From the sequence record ON529858.1: a stretch of DNA of 64,000 bases; one strand, written 5' to 3'. The position numbers and the translations under genes were made by a program. The notes beneath the pieces are model-generated. The model worked only from the letters and a program-made list of their open reading frames with translations. It searched no databases and had not been told where the DNA came from. The stretch's first letter is position 1. Each line of letters starts with the position of its first letter. This document shows positions 2,940-50,835 of the stretch, in pieces.

Positions 2940-5900
2940 ATGACCGAACAAACCAGCTTCAAGATCGACTCCAAGGGGGCTCAGCGCGACCTAGACGCGC
3001 TGGCCTCCGCACTCGATCGCGCCGCCGGCGCCGCTGGTCGGATGGACCGGGACTTCGCCAAGGCGGCGCAGTCGGCCGACAAGAACCTCAAGACCGCGTC
3101 GCGCGCGATGGAGCGCTACGCCCAGATCGCGACCCTGCTGTCGCGCATCAAGTTCGCCGGCGACGGCGCAGGCCAGATCGCCAAGTTCGGTCAGGCCCTG
3201 GACTCGCTTGGCAAGGCTCGCTCGATCAAGCCTGAAACCATCAAGGGCTTCGTCAACCTCATCGACGTCGCCGCCCGCGCTCAGCGCATCGCCTTCAATC
3301 CCGCTTTCGGCAACTCGATCCGCGACATCGCCTCGGCGATGGACTCGCTCGGCCGCGCGCGCCCGCTGCGCGACGGGACCCTGAAGTCGTTCGTCCAACT
3401 CATCGACGTCACGTCCCGCGCCCAGCGCGTGCGGATCGACCCTGGCTTCGCCGCCGGGATGAAGAACATCGCCGGCGCCATGGACTTTGTCGGCCGCGCC
3501 CGCGCCATCCGCCCGCAGACCCTGAAGTCCTTCGTCGACTTCATCGAGATCGCGGCCCGCTCCCAGCGCCTGAAGTTCGACCCGTCCACGGCCCAGAGCC
3601 TGCGGGCGTTCGGCGCTGCCATCTCGCAACTGAAGCCGCCGGGCAAGGCCGCCATCGAACGTCTGGACAAGATGTTCGTCGTGCTGGCGAACGCCAAGAA
3701 GATTCCGAACGCCGCCGCGATCGCGCGTGACCTGGACATGGTCGCCGCCGCCGCCGGCCGCGCCTCCAACGCCCTCGGCGCCCTGCCCGCTCGTATGCGC
3801 AGCGCTGGCGGCGGTGGCGGCGGACGTGCGTTCCAAGAGACGGCCGCAGGCGCGAACGCCGCGACCAAGGGCTTCTCCAACTACGCCTCCGGCGCCGAGA
3901 AGGCCGGCAAGGGGACCTACACCCTGGGCGAGCGCCTGCGCGGTCTGAACCACCGGTTCTCGATCGCCTATCAGGCCGGCACCCTGTTCACCTCCATGTT
4001 CGCCTCCTTCACGCTGGGCGGGTTCATCAAGGGCATCTTCGATGCCTCGATCAACCTCGCGAAGCTGGAGAAGTCCATGACCTTCGCGACGCGCTCGACG
4101 GAGGCCGGTCACCAAGCGACCATGCGCTTCATCGGCGCCGCCCAGGAAATGGGTCTCAGCCTGAACTCGGTCTCCGAGTCGTTCGGCCGCTTCTCGATCT
4201 CGTCGGGCGCCGCCGGCATGTCGCAGGCTGAGTCGTCGGAAGTCTTCATGTCCGTCGCCCGCTCGCTGCAAGTCGTCGGCGCGTCCGCCCAGCAGACCGA
4301 ATACGCGATGTATGGTCTGACGCAGATGATTCAGAAGGGCAAGGTTTCGTCCGAAGAGTTCAACCGTCAGATCGGTGAACAAATCCCCGGTAACGCCACG
4401 GCCGGCGCCATGGCGATGTCCAAGATTCTCGGCCGCAAGGTCGAACTCGCCGAGTTCTTCGACATGATGCGCAAGGGGCAAATCATGTCGAAGGAGTTCT
4501 CGATCGAGTGGGCGCGCGCCCTGAACTCGATGTTCGCTCCCATGCAGGGGATGCTCCAGAACCGTCCTGACCTCGCCGTCAACCGCCTGAAGAACGCCTT
4601 CACGATCTTCCAGCAGGAGATCGGCAAGAACCGCTTCATGACCGAGATCGGCGTCCAACTGAACCGCCTCGCGGGTCTGTTCGGCAAGGTCGAGAACGGC
4701 GTCTTCAAGCTGCATGACCCGGTCCGGGAACTTGCCAAGCAACTCGGCCACAACCTCGCCAACGGCGTGCGTGTGATCGGTGACGCCCTGGTCTGGGCGT
4801 TCGAGAACATGGACAAGCTGATCCTGGCCGGCAAGGGCATGGCTGCTCTCCTGGTCGGCTCGACCTTCTTCTCCTGGGGCAAGAGCGCGATCGAGGCCGC
4901 CGGCAAGATCATGCTGATGGTCGGCGCCATGCGCGCCGCCAAGGTTGAAGCCGCCGCGACCGCCACGGCGAAGACGGTCCAGGCCGCCGCCACCACGCCC
5001 GGCATCGTCGGCGCGGGTGCGTCGACGGCTGACATCATCGCCCAACGCAACATGCGCGGCATCGCGCCCACGGCGGTCGGCGGCTCTGTGACCACCGCTC
5101 AGAAGTTCGCCTCGAACAACGAATACGGCGTCAACACCTTCGCTCGCCCGACCGGTCCCGACGGCAAGCCCGCCCAAGGCATGGGCGCACGTCAGTTCGG
5201 CCGCCGCGCCCTGTCGCCCGCGCTCGCCAATGCCGGCGCGGCTTCCGCTGCTGCCTCGGGCGCAGGCCAGATCGCATCCGCCGGCACCGCCGCTGCGGGC
5301 GCGGCTCCCAAGGTGAACATGCTGAGCGGCGCCATCCGTGGCCTGGGTCTGGCGTTCGGCGCCTTCTCGCTCCTGGCGATCGCCGCCGTCGCAACCCTGG
5401 CCGTCTTCTCGGACAAGCAGGTCGAAGTCGCCGGCAAGTCCGTCAAGGGCGGAGACATTATGATGGGCTCGCTCGACGTCGTCGGGAAGTCCTTCAAGGA
5501 TTGGGCCAAGACCACCGGCGACAGCATCACCGGCGTGTCGGGTTCGTTCGACTGGCTGGACAAGAACGCCGGCGAACTGATGGTCGGCCTGATGGCGGCT
5601 GTCATCACGATCGGCAAGACCTTCCTGACCGTCTTCACCTCGATCGGCAAGATCATCGGCACCGTCGTCGCCAACATGATCATCCCGGCGATGATGGGTA
5701 TCTCCAAGCTGGCGAAGGGCGACATCATCGGCGCCGCCGAGACCTTCCTGAAGGAATCCTTCACCGGCAACGCCAGCCGCATGATGGAAACCGCCCGCGA
5801 GATCGGTGGAGACTTCGTCGCCGCCGCCGACTACGAAGGCACCGCCACCTCGATTCGCACTGCCGCGATCGGGCGCGCCACCGACCGCAACGCCGCGAAC

Positions 5901-46424: not shown

Positions 46425-47174
46425 TCAGCGGGCGTAGCGAAGTTCGGGCGCGATGACGGAGATGCCGGTAGCCGGATCGACCTTGGCCCAATCCCAGACG
46501 AACCAAGCGTAGGGGAACCGGGGCGAGCCGCTGCTGTCGGCGATCCAGCGCGGGCGATGCCGCAGCGTGATCTTCATGGCGAAGGCCGGGTGGTCGAAGA
46601 GGTCGGACCGGCTCTTGGCGCAGTCCCATTCGTGGCGGCAGAGCACGGCCACGAGACCGGCCTGGGGCTGCATCAGGTGCAGCGCGTGCCGGGTGATCGC
46701 CTCGGCGTCCTTGCCGTAGGGCGGGTTGGTGATGATCGCCGACGGCAGTTCGCCGTTGTTGCCGGGGCGGAGCGCGGCGAACTCGCTCAGGGTGATGGGA
46801 AATGCGCCGGCGGTCTCGACGTCGACGTTGTCGACGGCCCACTGGAGAAAGGCTTCGTCGCAGGCGGCGGTGTCGTCGTCGCGATAGATGCGCAGGAAGT
46901 CGATCAGCTTGTCCGAAACGAACCCATTCTGGGAGACGATGTCCGACGTGTAGACATCGCGCACCAACTCGCGCAGGGGCTCCGACACCGCACCGTCGCC
47001 GACGCAGGGCTCCCAGGCGATGTAGCCGGCGAGGTCGTCGCCGATGATCTGGAACAGACCGTCCAGCGCCGGGCGCGGGGTGGCGTAGAAGTCGTTGGCG
47101 ATGCGCTCGTAACCGGAGGTGCCGAGAGCGGACGGGTCCTTGCGGGGCGCGTCGGAGAGGGGTGCGGGGTTCAT
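46425..47174 (-). CDS. Amino (N6-adenine/N4-cytosine) DNA methyltransferase
   Basis: DFYATP, WEPCVGDG, IITNPPY. Confidence 0.82.
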   Translation of the reverse strand: MNPAPLSDAPRKDPSALGTSGYERIANDFYATPRPALDGLFQIIGDDLAGYIAWEPCVGDGAVSEPLRELVRDVYTSDIVSQNGFVSDKLIDFLRIYRDDDTAACDEAFLQWAVDNVDVETAGAFPITLSEFAALRPGNNGELPSAIITNPPYGKDAEAITRHALHLMQPQAGLVAVLCRHEWDCAKSRSDLFDHPAFAMKITLRHRPRWIADSSGSPRFPYAWFVWDWAKVDPATGISVIAPELRYAR

Positions 47175-47206
47175 GGTTAACGTCTGTCTCACACTCGGAG
47201 AAGGAC

Positions 47207-47222
47207 GTCAAGATTCACGACG
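47207..47222 (-). promoter_or_regulatory. Phage promoter motif copy
   Basis: Minus strand CGTCG-TGAATC-TTGAC. Confidence 0.72.
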
Positions 47223-47243
47223 TTCGAGGTCAAGAATCCTGCA

Positions 47244-47272
47244 TTGACGGCGTGAAACGCCCGATCTATAAG
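47244..47272 (+). promoter_or_regulatory. sigma70 promoter of the + strand RNA
   Basis: TTGACG-N17-TATAAG. Confidence 0.75.
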
Positions 47273-47277
47273 GGTGG

Positions 47278-47755
47278 CTCGAACCAGGGCGGTCCTGCTT
47301 CGCCATCCCCCAGCAGCGCAGCGCCGGGGTGGATCATCCGCCCTGGGGGAGACTGCCGACGGCGTCTAGCAGGACGTTGGGAGCGACAACAGGCTACGTC
47401 CGGAACCCCGCTGCGCCGTTGGGGGTGACCTTCCAAGCCGAAGTAGGAGTGGAGCAAAGCCTGGACCGGCCCTCCACGGTCGTCGCACGGGGCGGGGCCT
47501 ACAGACCGTGATGAGGCGAACGCCGGCCGAGACTAGGCAACCAGGGCGTGACAGCAGGCAGAGACCGCGCTATCCTTCATCGTTCGCAGAACGCTAGGCG
47601 TAGACACCGGACGGTGTCGGTAGCAGATCGGTGGTGGAGACGTCCGCTCCCACCGGCAACCCATCCCGAGGGTGGCAACGAGACGGATGACGCGGCGCCG
47701 GCCGAGAGAAGACGATGGCGATGAGAGCCCTGCTGGCGCGCCGGCAGGGCTTTTT
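47278..47755 (+). ncRNA. Candidate ~480-nt pseudoknotted structured RNA
   Basis: Promoter-to-terminator unit with no codon-biased ORF; several perfect interleaved helices. Confidence 0.7.
47726..47755 (+). terminator. Intrinsic terminator
   Basis: AGCCCTGCTGG-CGCG-CCGGCAGGGCT then TTTT. Confidence 0.8.
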
Positions 47756-47760
47756 CATGG

Positions 47761-47798
47761 AAAAGGCCATTTTCACCGCACAGTGAAAATGGCCTTTT
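47761..47798. terminator. Perfect 16-bp inverted repeat between convergent RNA units
   Basis: AAAAGGCCATTTTCAC-CGCACA-GTGAAAATGGCCTTTT. Confidence 0.7.
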
Positions 47799-47807
47799 GA
47801 GTGAAAC

Positions 47808-47894
47808 TGGAGGAATGTGGCGGAATCGAACCGCCGGGTCTCTCGACCATCACAGATTTGCAGTCTGTGGCCTTACCACTCGGTCCAACATCCC
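47808..47894 (-). tRNA. tRNA with GCA (Cys) anticodon and long variable arm
   Basis: GGGAUGU/ACAUUCC acceptor, ACAGA-CUGCAAA-UCUGU, GGCGG-UUCGAUU-CCGCC, U73, encoded CCA. Confidence 0.88.
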
Positions 47895-47897
47895 GAC

Positions 47898-47931
47898 CAA
47901 AAAGCCCGCTCGGCCGAAGCTGAGCGGGCTG
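47898..47931 (-). terminator. Intrinsic terminator closing the large minus-strand RNA
   Basis: AGCCCGCTCAG-CTTCGG-CCGAGCGGGCT-TTTT. Confidence 0.75.
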
Positions 47932-48096
47932 TTCCGGTAACCAGGGGAGTGCCGTAGCTGTCCCAAGGTGCTGAGCGACTTGTGCGAGGGCGATCCGCCA
48001 ACCTCACCAGACCCCGGCGCCGGGTTCTGGACCTCACGTCGGCCACCTCGAACTCCGAAGAGGGGGAAGCCGATGAGGGCATGTGGGTCCCAGGGT

Positions 48097-48165
48097 CCTC
48101 TCCCGCGCTATCAACCCGGTCGGTTCCCTGGTCAGGCCCTCTCCCGCGCTATGAACCCGGTCGGT
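48097..48165 (-). repeat. Two 28-nt direct repeats (1 mismatch) 13 nt apart inside the large RNA
   Basis: ACCGACCGGGTT(C/G)ATAGCGCGGGAGAGG at 48138-48165 and 48097-48124. Confidence 0.9.
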
Positions 48166-49025
48166 GCCTTCATAAATAGGAAACGCCGCCGAACCCGAGG
48201 GCGCGGCGGCGTGTCTTTCGATGCCCTGAGACGAAGCGGGCTATCCAGAGAGGCTTCCGGGATTATCGTTTCCCCAGGTCGTCCAGAAGGCTTTCACCTC
48301 CCTACCCCTCGAATGACGCTTTGTTTAACCGGGTGTCCCCGGAGGAAGTTGCTGCGCTCCCTGTCGTATTGGACCACTCACCTGCGTCCCCTTCCGAATA
48401 CAGCCGCTAAGCCGCACAAGGAAGTCTGTTCAAGCGGACCGTGCGCCTTGCAGGGCTAACACGGCGACCTTACGTCCGAAGACCAAGGCCAGGAGTCATC
48501 TGTCGTCCAACACCGGCAAGACTTTTGCTTCTTGACAAAAATGCCTGTTTGACACGGGCTACCTACCCGTCGAGGTTTATTCCAAGGACACGCTTACCTG
48601 GAGGTCCATCGGCTTTTGACCGACAAAATGCTCCGCGCCCCAATGTGAACCGAACAGCCCACGGTCTACAGGACGCCGCCGAGTTTGACCCCGACTTAAC
48701 CCTGGAGACTGGACGCCGCACTTAACCCATGTCGTGGGTCTCGCACTAAACGCCCTACGCCTTGGACCTCGATGGTTCTCTCGGAGGATTCCGGCAGCGG
48801 GAGCATCCCTGCTCTCACCTGAACCCATGGTGTTGCCATGAGCCTTGACCGGCCGAGGTAGCCCCTATCCCCCATACGCCTCCATCTCTGGAGCCATCTG
48901 AGGGACACCCTGGTAGGGTGGGTCCCGACGCTTGCTTCGAATGACCGACTTGCGCCGGCGCCGGACTGGAAAGTTCCGACTTCACCACCGGTTGCCCGGC
49001 GGCCTCGCTCCGAAGCGATGAGTGA

Positions 49026-49054
49026 GGTTTAGCGACGTCATTCGTCGCGGTCAA
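49026..49054 (-). promoter_or_regulatory. sigma70 promoter of the large RNA with the operator palindrome in its spacer
   Basis: TTGACC-N17-TAAACC; CGACG-N5-CGTCG at 49033-49047. Confidence 0.7.
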
Positions 49055-49084
49055 CAACATTTTTCGAGGGACCCGCCGCGAAGC

Positions 49085-49093
49085 TGTGGATAA
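49085..49093. promoter_or_regulatory. Perfect DnaA box between divergent RNA promoters
   Basis: TGTGGATAA. Confidence 0.5.
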
Positions 49094-49122
49094 CTTTTCT
49101 TGCTGCCTGGGTGTCAGGATTC

Positions 49123-49151
49123 TTGACACAGGGTGTCAACGAGCATATAGG
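49123..49151 (+). promoter_or_regulatory. sigma70 promoter of the tmRNA-tRNA operon
   Basis: TTGACA-N17-TATAGG. Confidence 0.8.
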
Positions 49152-49156
49152 GGAGA

Positions 49157-49570
49157 GATCGAGCAGATGCCTTCGGGCTGAAAACTGTGACATGAAAGAC
49201 GGGCCGGACTCGGGTGCGATTCCCGACGGCTCCACCAAAAGCGCCCATCCGGCATGTCAGACCTTCGGGTCGGTGTCAGGGGATGAGGCTAGTCCCCGGC
49301 GAAGAGGTGTCGTAGAACGCGCCCTCTACCGAAAGCCAGGGTGGACGCTTTTGTTGGGGCCGACCAGATTCGACGGGCGTTGGTAGTGAAGTGGGTTCGA
49401 TGGGTGGCTCCCCCAGCCAAGCACTGACAAATGTCGCTGCAAATGACAACGCTCCGTTCGCGGTGCGTGAAGCCATCGCCGCCTAATAAGCGGTAGAGGG
49501 GTGTCCGGAGGGGCGCCTGTCACAAAAAGCCACTCGCCTCCGGGCCGGTGGTTCCCTCCACCACCAGTTT
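49157..49570 (+). ncRNA. ssrA: Circularly permuted two-piece tmRNA (3' boundary approximate)
   Basis: Acceptor piece ending CUCGGG-UGCGAUU-CCCGA-CGGCUCC-A-CCA (49237) precedes the coding piece starting GGGGCCG (49356); G3-U70 pair; tag ORF ANDNAPFAVREAIAA* at 49439-49486; inter-piece pairing UGUGACA/UGUCACA. Confidence 0.93.
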
Positions 49571-49663
49571 CCAAAGGTGGGCTGCAACCTCCTACGTCGT
49601 GCTTCTCGGAGGCGACGGGTGGACCGCACCAAGCGCGGTCCTGACAAAGCGCAGCACATTTAT

Positions 49664-49742
49664 CGCGGGATAGAGGAGTCCGGTTGTCCTCGTCTGCCTC
49701 ATAAGCAGAAGATCGGGGGTTCAAATCCCCCTCCCGCATCCA
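49664..49742 (+). tRNA. tRNA-CAU, initiator-like (C1:A72, A11-U24) but lacking the three G-C anticodon-stem pairs
   Basis: CGCGGGA/UCCCGCA, UCUGC-CUCAUAA-GCAGA, GGGGG-UUCAAAU-CCCCC, U73-CCA. Confidence 0.92.
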
Positions 49743-49876
49743 TTCTCCTGACCCTCTCATCCGGTGCAACTCCGGGCGGGCGCAACCCGTGGGGGTATGG
49801 AGTGAAGCCCAGGAGCCGGAGCGATCCGTCCGCTGGGCTGGGCCGGTCCTGCGGGGCCGGCCCCGACTTTCTTAGG

Positions 49877-49961
49877 CGTGCGATGGCCGAGTGGTCTATG
49901 GCGGCGGGCTCATAACTCGCTGGAGCAATCCGCGTTGGTTCGAATCCAACTCGCACGTCCA
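49877..49961 (+). tRNA. tRNA-CAU with class II long variable arm
   Basis: CGUGCGA/UCGCACG, GCGGG-CUCAUAA-CUCGC, V-arm UGGAGCAAUCCGC, GUUGG-UUCGAAU-CCAAC, U73-CCA. Confidence 0.9.
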
Positions 49962-49970
49962 AGCCTTCCG

Positions 49971-50003
49971 AACCCCCGGCGCCGCATAGGCTCCGGGGGT
50001 TTT
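49971..50003 (+). terminator. Intrinsic terminator of the tmRNA-tRNA operon
   Basis: AACCCCCGG...CCGGGGGTTTT. Confidence 0.75.
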
Positions 50004-50008
50004 GCGTA

Positions 50009-50374
50009 TCAGGCTCGGCGGTCCGCCTGGGCGAGCCGGGCTTCAGCGCGCTCGTGCGAGCGTTGCTCGGCGGCGTAGCGGCTCATGTCCTTCAGGTGGG
50101 CGATCGCCACGGAGTCGGGCGCGCCGACGGCCCGGAACGGGACCTTGGGCGCCATCTCGACATAGCGATGCAGGAGAGGTTGGAAGGGGACCTTGTGCTC
50201 GATCGCGACGCGGGCCAGGGCGGCGGCGACGATGGCGACGATGATGGTCTCAGGCGTCCGGGTCGGTTCTATGTTCCACAGACCAGGAACCGACTGTCCT
50301 GGGTGCTGCGTCTGTCTCGATACGTCGTCTGCGGCGTAGCGGAACAGGTTCTCATAGGCAGTGCCCTGTAGCAT
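50009..50374 (-). CDS. Hypothetical protein
   Basis: ~121-aa ORF with GGA RBS. Confidence 0.55.
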   Translation of the reverse strand: MLQGTAYENLFRYAADDVSRQTQHPGQSVPGLWNIEPTRTPETIIVAIVAAALARVAIEHKVPFQPLLHRYVEMAPKVPFRAVGAPDSVAIAHLKDMSRYAAEQRSHERAEARLAQADRRA

Positions 50375-50436
50375 CAGCGGTCCTTGTCGTGTGTGGGTTG
50401 ACAAGGGGTAGCACTGTTTATGCTACGCTTCTAGCC

Positions 50437-50835
50437 CTAAAGTCGACCCGAGTTGTATTCGGCCCAGCGATCCGACCAGTATTCCTCGTAGTCCTCGGCG
50501 CAGTCCGTGCAGAGCCAGACCTTGTTCGGGTCGGGCTCGCCGCTCTTGGGGTCCCAGACGTAGCAGGTCATCGACCCAGGCTGATGCACGCCGTAGAAGG
50601 AGCCGCAGTTCTCGCAGCCGCCGAGCGCGGCGCCCTGCTCGGCGAAGTGACCGTTGATGGCCCAGCGCAGGCGGTTGAAGTTACCCCAGATCAGGTGCTT
50701 GAAGGCGTTCCGCAGGAACCACGTCCTGGTGCCGTATCGCACGGTCCAGCGCATCGGCTCCCAGGTGAAGACCTTGACCTTCTCGATCGTGACCGGGCCG
50801 ATCACGACCTTCTCAGGTGTCCATGATAGCGTCAA
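50437..50835 (-). CDS. Hypothetical Cys-rich (possible Zn-binding) protein; start uncertain
   Basis: CENC...C...CTDC pattern; Trp-rich. Confidence 0.55.
   Translation of the reverse strand: MTLSWTPEKVVIGPVTIEKVKVFTWEPMRWTVRYGTRTWFLRNAFKHLIWGNFNRLRWAINGHFAEQGAALGGCENCGSFYGVHQPGSMTCYVWDPKSGEPDPNKVWLCTDCAEDYEEYWSDRWAEYNSGRL

Follow-up and report, generated by a model that had tools for sequence, protein, structure and literature searches.

In the genome of Brevundimonas phage vB_BgoS-Bajun (ON529858.1, 207 kb; Dolichocephalovirinae, phiCbK-like), the 1.1-kb stretch at 47898-49019 very probably consists of two RNA genes on the minus strand that are followed by tRNA-Cys: a GOLLD RNA of about 844 nucleotides (nt) and a separate, conserved small RNA. 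All positions refer to the window, i.e., the 64,000 nt of this record that were analysed (window coordinate = record coordinate minus 143,261). GenBank has no annotation between tRNA-Cys (47808-47894, minus strand) and a two-piece transfer-messenger RNA (tmRNA; 49145-49577, plus strand), including 47898-49019. An earlier note on this DNA had proposed one giant structured RNA with its own promoter and terminator upstream of a tRNA; the tRNA directly downstream on the same strand is this tRNA-Cys, and the other parts of the proposal are taken up below with the results that bear on them.

The identity of the Bajun GOLLD (a family reportedly described by Weinberg et al. in 2009), the conservation of its fold, its synteny and, by comparison, its boundaries can be established directly at the level of sequence. 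The Rfam model of GOLLD (RF02032) matched the minus strand at 48641..48223 over its full length (model positions 1-416 of 416) with 104 bits and an E-value of 1.9e-27 (E-value-mode search over the 4 kb at 46500-50500, both strands), and ROOL (RF03087) gave no match in this region on either strand at E <= 10, so that of the two classes suggested by eye, GOLLD and ROOL, only the first stands. The parsed RF02032 alignment displays 94 model pairs, 80 of which are standard and 3 non-standard in Bajun; 37 pairs are changed on both sides relative to the consensus and still pair. The pseudoknot of the 3' domain (GUGUUGGAC with GUCCAAUAC) retains nine of ten pairs as standard pairs, four of these nine departing from the consensus, two of them on both sides and two on one side only, and 90 of the 125 highly conserved model positions are identical in Bajun. 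The conserved 3' domain (48223..48641, minus strand) comprises the UCAAAAG hairpin, a short linker free of tRNA, GCAAAAGUCUU, the pseudoknot (carried by a conserved core of ~360 nt), GGGGAAACGAUAAUCCC and the UCUCAG hairpin, and the signature motifs UCAAAAG, GCAAAAGUCUU, GGGGAAA..AUAAUCCC and UCUCAG all occur in order and with the usual spacing.

Two of the hairpins picked out by eye, GGAGG-UGAAAG-CCUUC and CCU-GCAA-GG, are GOLLD consensus hairpins, and the third (CAAGA...UCUUG) falls in a stretch that the model leaves single-stranded (GCAAAAGUCUU). The positions given for the CUUCGG motifs, 47914, 48055, 48476 and 49010, are exact (minus strand; four copies in 1122 nt, where the window averages 0.66 per kb per strand; Poisson estimate p about 0.007), although only some of them can be read as C(UUCG)G loops: that at 48476 caps a conserved GOLLD hairpin and that at 47914 is a terminator loop, 48055 is ambiguous, and 49010 is likely a helix strand. 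The 844-nt RNA has a minimum free energy of -376 kcal/mol compared to -341 +/- 10 kcal/mol for shuffled sequences (z = -3.45), in agreement with the structured RNA that had been proposed.

The boundaries of the GOLLD gene are predicted from conserved positions of promoter and terminator. Upstream lies a host-type (Caulobacter sigma-73-like) promoter on the minus strand (49026..49054), read from the sequence, with the -35 element TTGACCG at 49054-49048, a 14-nt spacer and the -10 element GCTAAACC at 49033-49026, which places the predicted start at about 49019. It fits the Caulobacter housekeeping consensus TTGACGS-N10-14-GCTANAWC, and phiCbK (TTGACGA-N14-GCTAGAAC), BL57 (TTGACGA-N14-GCTACAAC) and CcrSC (TTGACCC-N14-TCTACAAC) share the conserved layout upstream of their GOLLDs, TTGAC..-N14-(G/T)CTAnAAC followed by (U)CAUCG(U)CGCUU; an E. 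coli-type scan for promoters and terminators called neither this Caulobacter-type promoter nor the imperfect terminators. At the 3' end, directly after the UCUCAG hairpin, a terminator-like hairpin (48172..48215, minus strand; inverted repeat I2) has 17-nt arms at 48215-48199 and 48196-48180, followed by UUUCCUAUUUAU, and overlaps the conserved CTATTTATG, a possible -10 element of the next gene. At the equivalent position the terminators of phiCbK (L002:5223-5256, then UUUUUGCUAUUUAUG) and CcrSC are stronger and carry a U5 tract. The GOLLD RNA would thus measure about 844 nt (49019..~48176), and the conserved boundaries in Bajun, phiCbK, BL57 and CcrSC give lengths of 844-918 nt. The GOLLD solved by cryo-electron microscopy (cryo-EM) comprises 833 nt, with residues 1-420 as its 5' domain (Kretsch et al., PMC12286853). 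The earlier note had considered the RNA longer than a typical GOLLD, which was due to counting in ~275 nt of a separate gene; the promoter and the strong terminator hairpin at 47933-47900 that it had claimed are both found, and a second terminator hairpin (48215-48180) followed by CTATTTATG lies between them and divides the supposed single unit into RNAs of ~844 and ~275 nt.

The 5' domain (48642..49019, minus strand; about 378 nt) is the variable half and lies outside the Rfam model. Over the first ~160 nt it shares 66-67% identity with the 5' regions of the GOLLDs of CcrSC and RB23, and a consensus fold of five sequences (Bajun, CcrSC, RB23, phiCbK and BL57) contains 82 pairs, 25 of them compensatory, including a long-range helix P1. 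In this helix a run of three adjacent positions shows covariation with a segment at a distance of 70 nt (GCUUCGG/UCGAAGC in Bajun, GCUUGAG/CUCAAGC in CcrSC), and the CUUCGG at 49010 is therefore most likely one strand of P1, a local hairpin being possible. The junction GUCCUGUAGACCGUG..GGUUCACA just before the start of the Rfam model resembles that of two unrelated freshwater GOLLDs from IMG/VR (L171 and L172).

The same slot, between divergent tmRNA and tRNA-Cys, is occupied in phiCbK by a GOLLD that scores 165 bits, above the Rfam cut-off. A complete tRNA-Gly (4789-4862) is inserted in the variable linker of the phiCbK GOLLD (L002:4725-5211), whereas the linker of Bajun is short and free of tRNA. 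In CcrRogue (L003:4621-5408) and CcrBL10 (L182), tmRNA, small RNA and tRNA-Cys are retained without a GOLLD between them; GOLLD therefore behaves as a cassette from promoter to terminator, which looks as if it had been gained or lost in this slot. By sequence, the Bajun GOLLD is nearer to the GOLLDs of Bertelyvirus (about 58% identity over the 3' domain), which sit at a different locus, than to that of phiCbK. A full-length GOLLD match had been anticipated to mean a known class in a new host group; the class is indeed a known one, but the host group is not new, as phiCbK-type Caulobacter phages carry GOLLD.

The last ~275 nt of the stretch are, on comparative grounds, an independent conserved gene with its own terminator, a candidate small RNA of ~200-275 nt that is previously undescribed (47899..48171, minus strand; core 48060-47932). 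It aligns upstream of tRNA-Cys in phiCbK, in BL57 and in the GOLLD-less CcrRogue and CcrBL10, and because in the latter two it is present with its own promoter (TTGCGGA-N14-GCTATAAG) we regard it as independent of GOLLD. The relatives share a CCGGCGCCGG-type hairpin, a near-invariant GGGA-CAGCUACGGCNC-UCCC hairpin (GGGA-CAGCUACGGCAC-UCCC in Bajun) and a terminator hairpin. The last is an intrinsic terminator in Bajun (47899..47933, minus strand; inverted repeat I4) with the stem GCCCGCUCAGC-UUCG-GCCGAGCGGGC, which covaries among relatives, followed by UUUUU and ending 5 nt before tRNA-Cys. The consensus fold has 40 pairs, 19 of them compensatory; covariation among related phages, a check that had been recommended, was seen in this RNA as in the GOLLD 5' domain. 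A covariance model of the core (R1) scored 113-128 bits in the group of phiCbK, Poindextervirus and Bajun only, with no confident members outside this group in 678 kb of loci, and the small RNA gave no Rfam match at E <= 10. At its 5' end Bajun alone has ~80 extra nt, where the relatives are gapped; they consist of two tandem 34-nt copies (48094-48127 and 48135-48168, minus strand; together 48094..48168, period 41, repeat family D1, 91% identity), the 28-nt core of which has two matches in the window and none in 100 shuffles. These may be a duplicated promoter or leader.

A shorter, divergent variant of the small-RNA motif was seen by eye in the metagenome contig Ga0181343_1013228 (L144:790-900, minus strand), where CCGGACAGCCACGGCUCUCCGG, whose stem carries a compensatory change, lies directly upstream of tRNA-Cys and is followed by GCTATTTGT; this locus, which has neither a separate terminator nor GOLLD, encodes the closest relative of the A1 protein of Bajun (78% identity). 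A conserved open reading frame (ORF) across the small RNA, in the DSYG[PT]PLVT frame, was likewise noticed by eye and was rejected because it runs through the terminator hairpin into the tRNA gene and because its composition is not of the coding type.

How the small RNA relates to its neighbours leaves room for two other readings, both unlikely. According to the first, the small RNA would be a new RNA class of phiCbK-like phages that works with GOLLD or tRNA-Cys, and the GOLLD of Bajun, lacking one of the two presumed half-cage kissing hairpins, would form a different or more open particle than the canonical 14-mer; if this were so, the small RNA could, e.g., be a 3' appendage made by read-through, be carried by the cage as cargo, act as its partner or regulate the tRNA/tmRNA module. 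The second, which we consider slightly less probable still, is a single transcript of ~1.1 kb, a GOLLD with a 3' extension made by read-through and ending at the terminator at 47933-47900, in which the downstream element would be an extra domain or would be set free by processing, perhaps along with tRNA-Cys. The elements are contiguous and all on one strand, the U-tract of the internal terminator is interrupted (UUUCCUAUUUAU) and its hairpin was not called by the terminator scan, and the sole clear promoter signal of the small RNA in Bajun is the -10-like CTATTTATG, all of which would suit a long transcript. Yet the downstream element has its own promoter in Rogue and BL10, both without GOLLD, it does not follow the GOLLD in CcrSC, the GOLLD 3' ends of phiCbK and CcrSC carry strong U5 terminators, and the UCUCAG hairpin is where canonical GOLLDs end. 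We therefore prefer the reading of two RNA genes.

Two further alternatives have next to no probability left. That the RNA represents a new giant phage class apart from GOLLD and ROOL could have been suspected from the silence of Rfam at gathering thresholds (the matches were confined to tRNAs and tmRNA, with nothing in the 1.1-kb region) and from blastn at "distant" sensitivity against 50,697 phage records, which retrieved Bajun itself and no other phage; it was already ruled out by the full-length match with its motifs, pairs and pseudoknot, by the syntenic GOLLD of phiCbK and by the published record. The Infernal alignment of GOLLD homologues in Supplementary File 3 of Kretsch et al. (Nature 2025, PMC12286853) contains the entry ON529858.1:c191902-191484, i.e., window 48223-48641 on the minus strand and exactly the Rfam match, together with phiCbK, Karma, Magneto, Swift, the Ccr-series phages and Bertelyvirus phages. 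The Bajun RNA thus belongs to a known class and this very locus was already catalogued. The other alternative is missed protein-coding DNA, e.g., a plus-strand ORF of 163 amino acids or a minus-strand ORF of 104 amino acids, and it is refuted as far as sequence can tell: ORFs of 69-163 amino acids do exist in the stretch, but long ORFs are expected by chance at 61-65% GC, the four longest had no match in Pfam, and the GC content of the ORFs at third codon positions (GC3) is 0.54-0.67, the genome-typical value of about 0.9 being seen in no reading frame. The lack of third-position codon bias that had been noted is evident in both parts, GC at codon positions 1/2/3 being flat at 0.58/0.60/0.62 in 48176-49019 and 0.62/0.70/0.66 in 47895-48175, compared to about 0.62/0.42/0.93 in the flanking coding sequences (third positions 0.89-0.93).

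Several observations weigh against our reading of the locus. The RF02032 score of 104 bits is below the Rfam gathering score of 150, a curation threshold and no biological feature, and default Rfam scans and standard annotation therefore miss the Bajun GOLLD. The low score is explained by the deletion of a hairpin and a few insertions: 11 of the 94 model pairs are deleted, and there are several insertions relative to the model, including 34 nt where 13 are expected. The canonical GOLLD (L171) and phiCbK have two hairpins in the internal multiloop, the first with the loop GGCC or UUAGCG and the second with the loop CGCAAG, whereas the multiloop of Bajun (48440-48390, minus strand) has one (loop UUAGCG) and misses the CGCAAG-loop hairpin. 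Mapped via the residue numbers of the cryo-EM paper, the two loops presumably correspond to L21a/L21b, symmetric kissing contacts that join the half-cages, and without the second hairpin the assembly in Bajun could differ. The alignment of the 5' domain was made with MAFFT and is noisy (covariation term +1.28), and the covariation of the small RNA comes from just three independent lineages. The interrupted U-tract of the GOLLD terminator makes read-through, and thus a transcript of ~1.1 kb, possible. Expression of the Bajun GOLLD is predicted from sequence signals; the phiCbK XRE paper holds no relevant RNA-seq evidence.

For the GOLLD of Bajun, transcription, the efficiency of termination, cage assembly and any role in translation are matters that we can only infer. 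Host RNA polymerase would transcribe the gene from its housekeeping-type promoter, the RNA would fold into separate 5' and 3' domains and, by homology with env-38, would most probably self-assemble without protein into a closed multimeric cage with the linker pointing inward. For the env-38 GOLLD a protein-free cage of 14 identical subunits has been seen by cryo-EM, with the 5' domains as caps, the 3' domains as rings and the linker inward; proposals for the function of the family include the enclosing of tRNAs or other molecules and ribosome binding (Kretsch et al., PMC12286853). The phage would produce the Bajun RNA in its lytic growth as one element of a translation-related module beside tmRNA, tRNA-Met and tRNA-Cys; its fixed place inside the tmRNA/tRNA cluster fits such a role.

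The tRNA-Cys (anticodon GCA) was identified by ARAGORN and Rfam (42.1 bits) in agreement with GenBank. The two-piece (permuted) tmRNA, of alphaproteobacterial type, matched the Rfam family tmRNA_permuted with 87.9 bits and has, according to ARAGORN, the tag peptide VAANDNAPFAVREAIAA. It and GOLLD are divergent genes, the tmRNA being transcribed from the promoter TTGACAC-N14-CATATAGG (49119-49577, plus strand), and two tRNA-Met genes come next. The protein genes flanking the interval from tRNA-Cys to tmRNA are on the minus strand in GenBank. The Y RNA-like family YrlA matched weakly between the two tRNA-Met genes of phiCbK (L002:3285-3352, minus strand; 29.7 bits, E 0.011, far short of the gathering score of 69), which may reflect a mere tRNA-like fold.

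On the other side of tRNA-Cys, a gap of ~630 nt up to a methylase gene (47175-47807) is noncoding (GC at codon positions 0.67/0.63/0.64), and the ORFs annotated there in phiCbK (gp290) and Rogue (gp307) are probably not genes because coding-type GC3 is absent. On the plus strand, an RNA of ~480 nt convergent with tRNA-Cys is suggested by a conserved element that resembles a promoter (TTGACGG-N14-TCTATAAG at 47244-47272; in phiCbK TTGACTG-N14-GCTAGACA) and by a terminator at 47726-47756. This putative RNA contains a motif at 47516-47560 (plus strand), in which a near-invariant core of ~37 nt (GCGAACGCCGGCCGAGAnnnGGC.AC.AGGCGUGAC) precedes a hairpin that covaries and has the loop AGAG. The core itself does not covary (both substitutions in predicted pairs break the pairing), and no Rfam match was found for the motif, which is located ~35 nt before tRNA-Cys in CcrPW and is present in two copies in the metagenomic contig L189, both of them immediately upstream of a small ORF. 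It could be either a promoter/operator or an RNA element.

Metagenomes were also scanned for further GOLLDs. A single motif (ARAAGCAAAAGTCTT) retrieved 113 stretches from IMG/VR, nearly all of them chance matches in AT-rich contigs, and was discarded; a pattern of three motifs yielded seven true canonical GOLLDs (one close group) and one chance match in IMG/VR, and in genome contigs three matches, all by chance inside apparent coding sequences. Relatives of a neighbouring gene product, an A1-like DNA transfer protein, were found at 49 metagenomic loci, only a few of which (L129, L140, L144 and L150) have tRNAs or tmRNA near the gene, and a motif search detected no GOLLD in them.

As the published alignment already includes both the Bajun copy and those of the phiCbK relatives, the Bajun GOLLD itself adds little to a family that is among the few natural RNAs known to build a protein-free cage. 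It does indicate that GC-rich GOLLDs are under-annotated, because both the default Rfam cut-off and the GenBank record miss it. The phiCbK-like phages offer a natural comparison set, with GOLLD carrying a linker tRNA (phiCbK), GOLLD without it (Bajun), GOLLD elsewhere in the genome (CcrSC) and GOLLD absent from the slot (Rogue and BL10), and since their Caulobacter and Brevundimonas hosts are genetically tractable they are suited to knock-out tests of GOLLD function. The two further conserved noncoding elements beside GOLLD, previously undescribed, are of modest interest.

Compared with known systems, ROOL is the most remote: it is likewise a large phage RNA that is found near tRNAs and forms a cage of RNA only (PMC12286853), but it did not match at E <= 10 and is unrelated in sequence and fold. 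With the GOLLD family (RF02032) as a whole, the Bajun RNA shares the 3' domain motifs and pseudoknot, a variable 5' domain (about 380-420 nt), an overall size near 840 nt and its place in a phage genome beside tRNA genes (tRNA-Cys lies about 280 nt past its predicted 3' end, with the small RNA gene in between). It differs by its high GC content (about 60%), its score below the cut-off, the single multiloop hairpin and the insertions. The GOLLD of phiCbK (Shapirovirus) agrees with that of Bajun in slot, orientation, promoter type, position of the terminator and the small RNA that follows, but has a tRNA-Gly in the linker and both multiloop hairpins, and its 3' domain has diverged from that of Bajun beyond detection by blastn. 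The GOLLDs of Bertelyvirus (CcrSC, RB23 and CcrBL9) are located near tRNA-Ser and tRNA-Trp genes with neither the small RNA nor tRNA-Cys after them. Of all relatives found they come closest to Bajun in sequence: identity reaches 66-67% over promoter plus initial ~160 nt, helix P1 covaries between them, and they stand near Bajun at the end of the published alignment list, which we take to be its low-scoring end.

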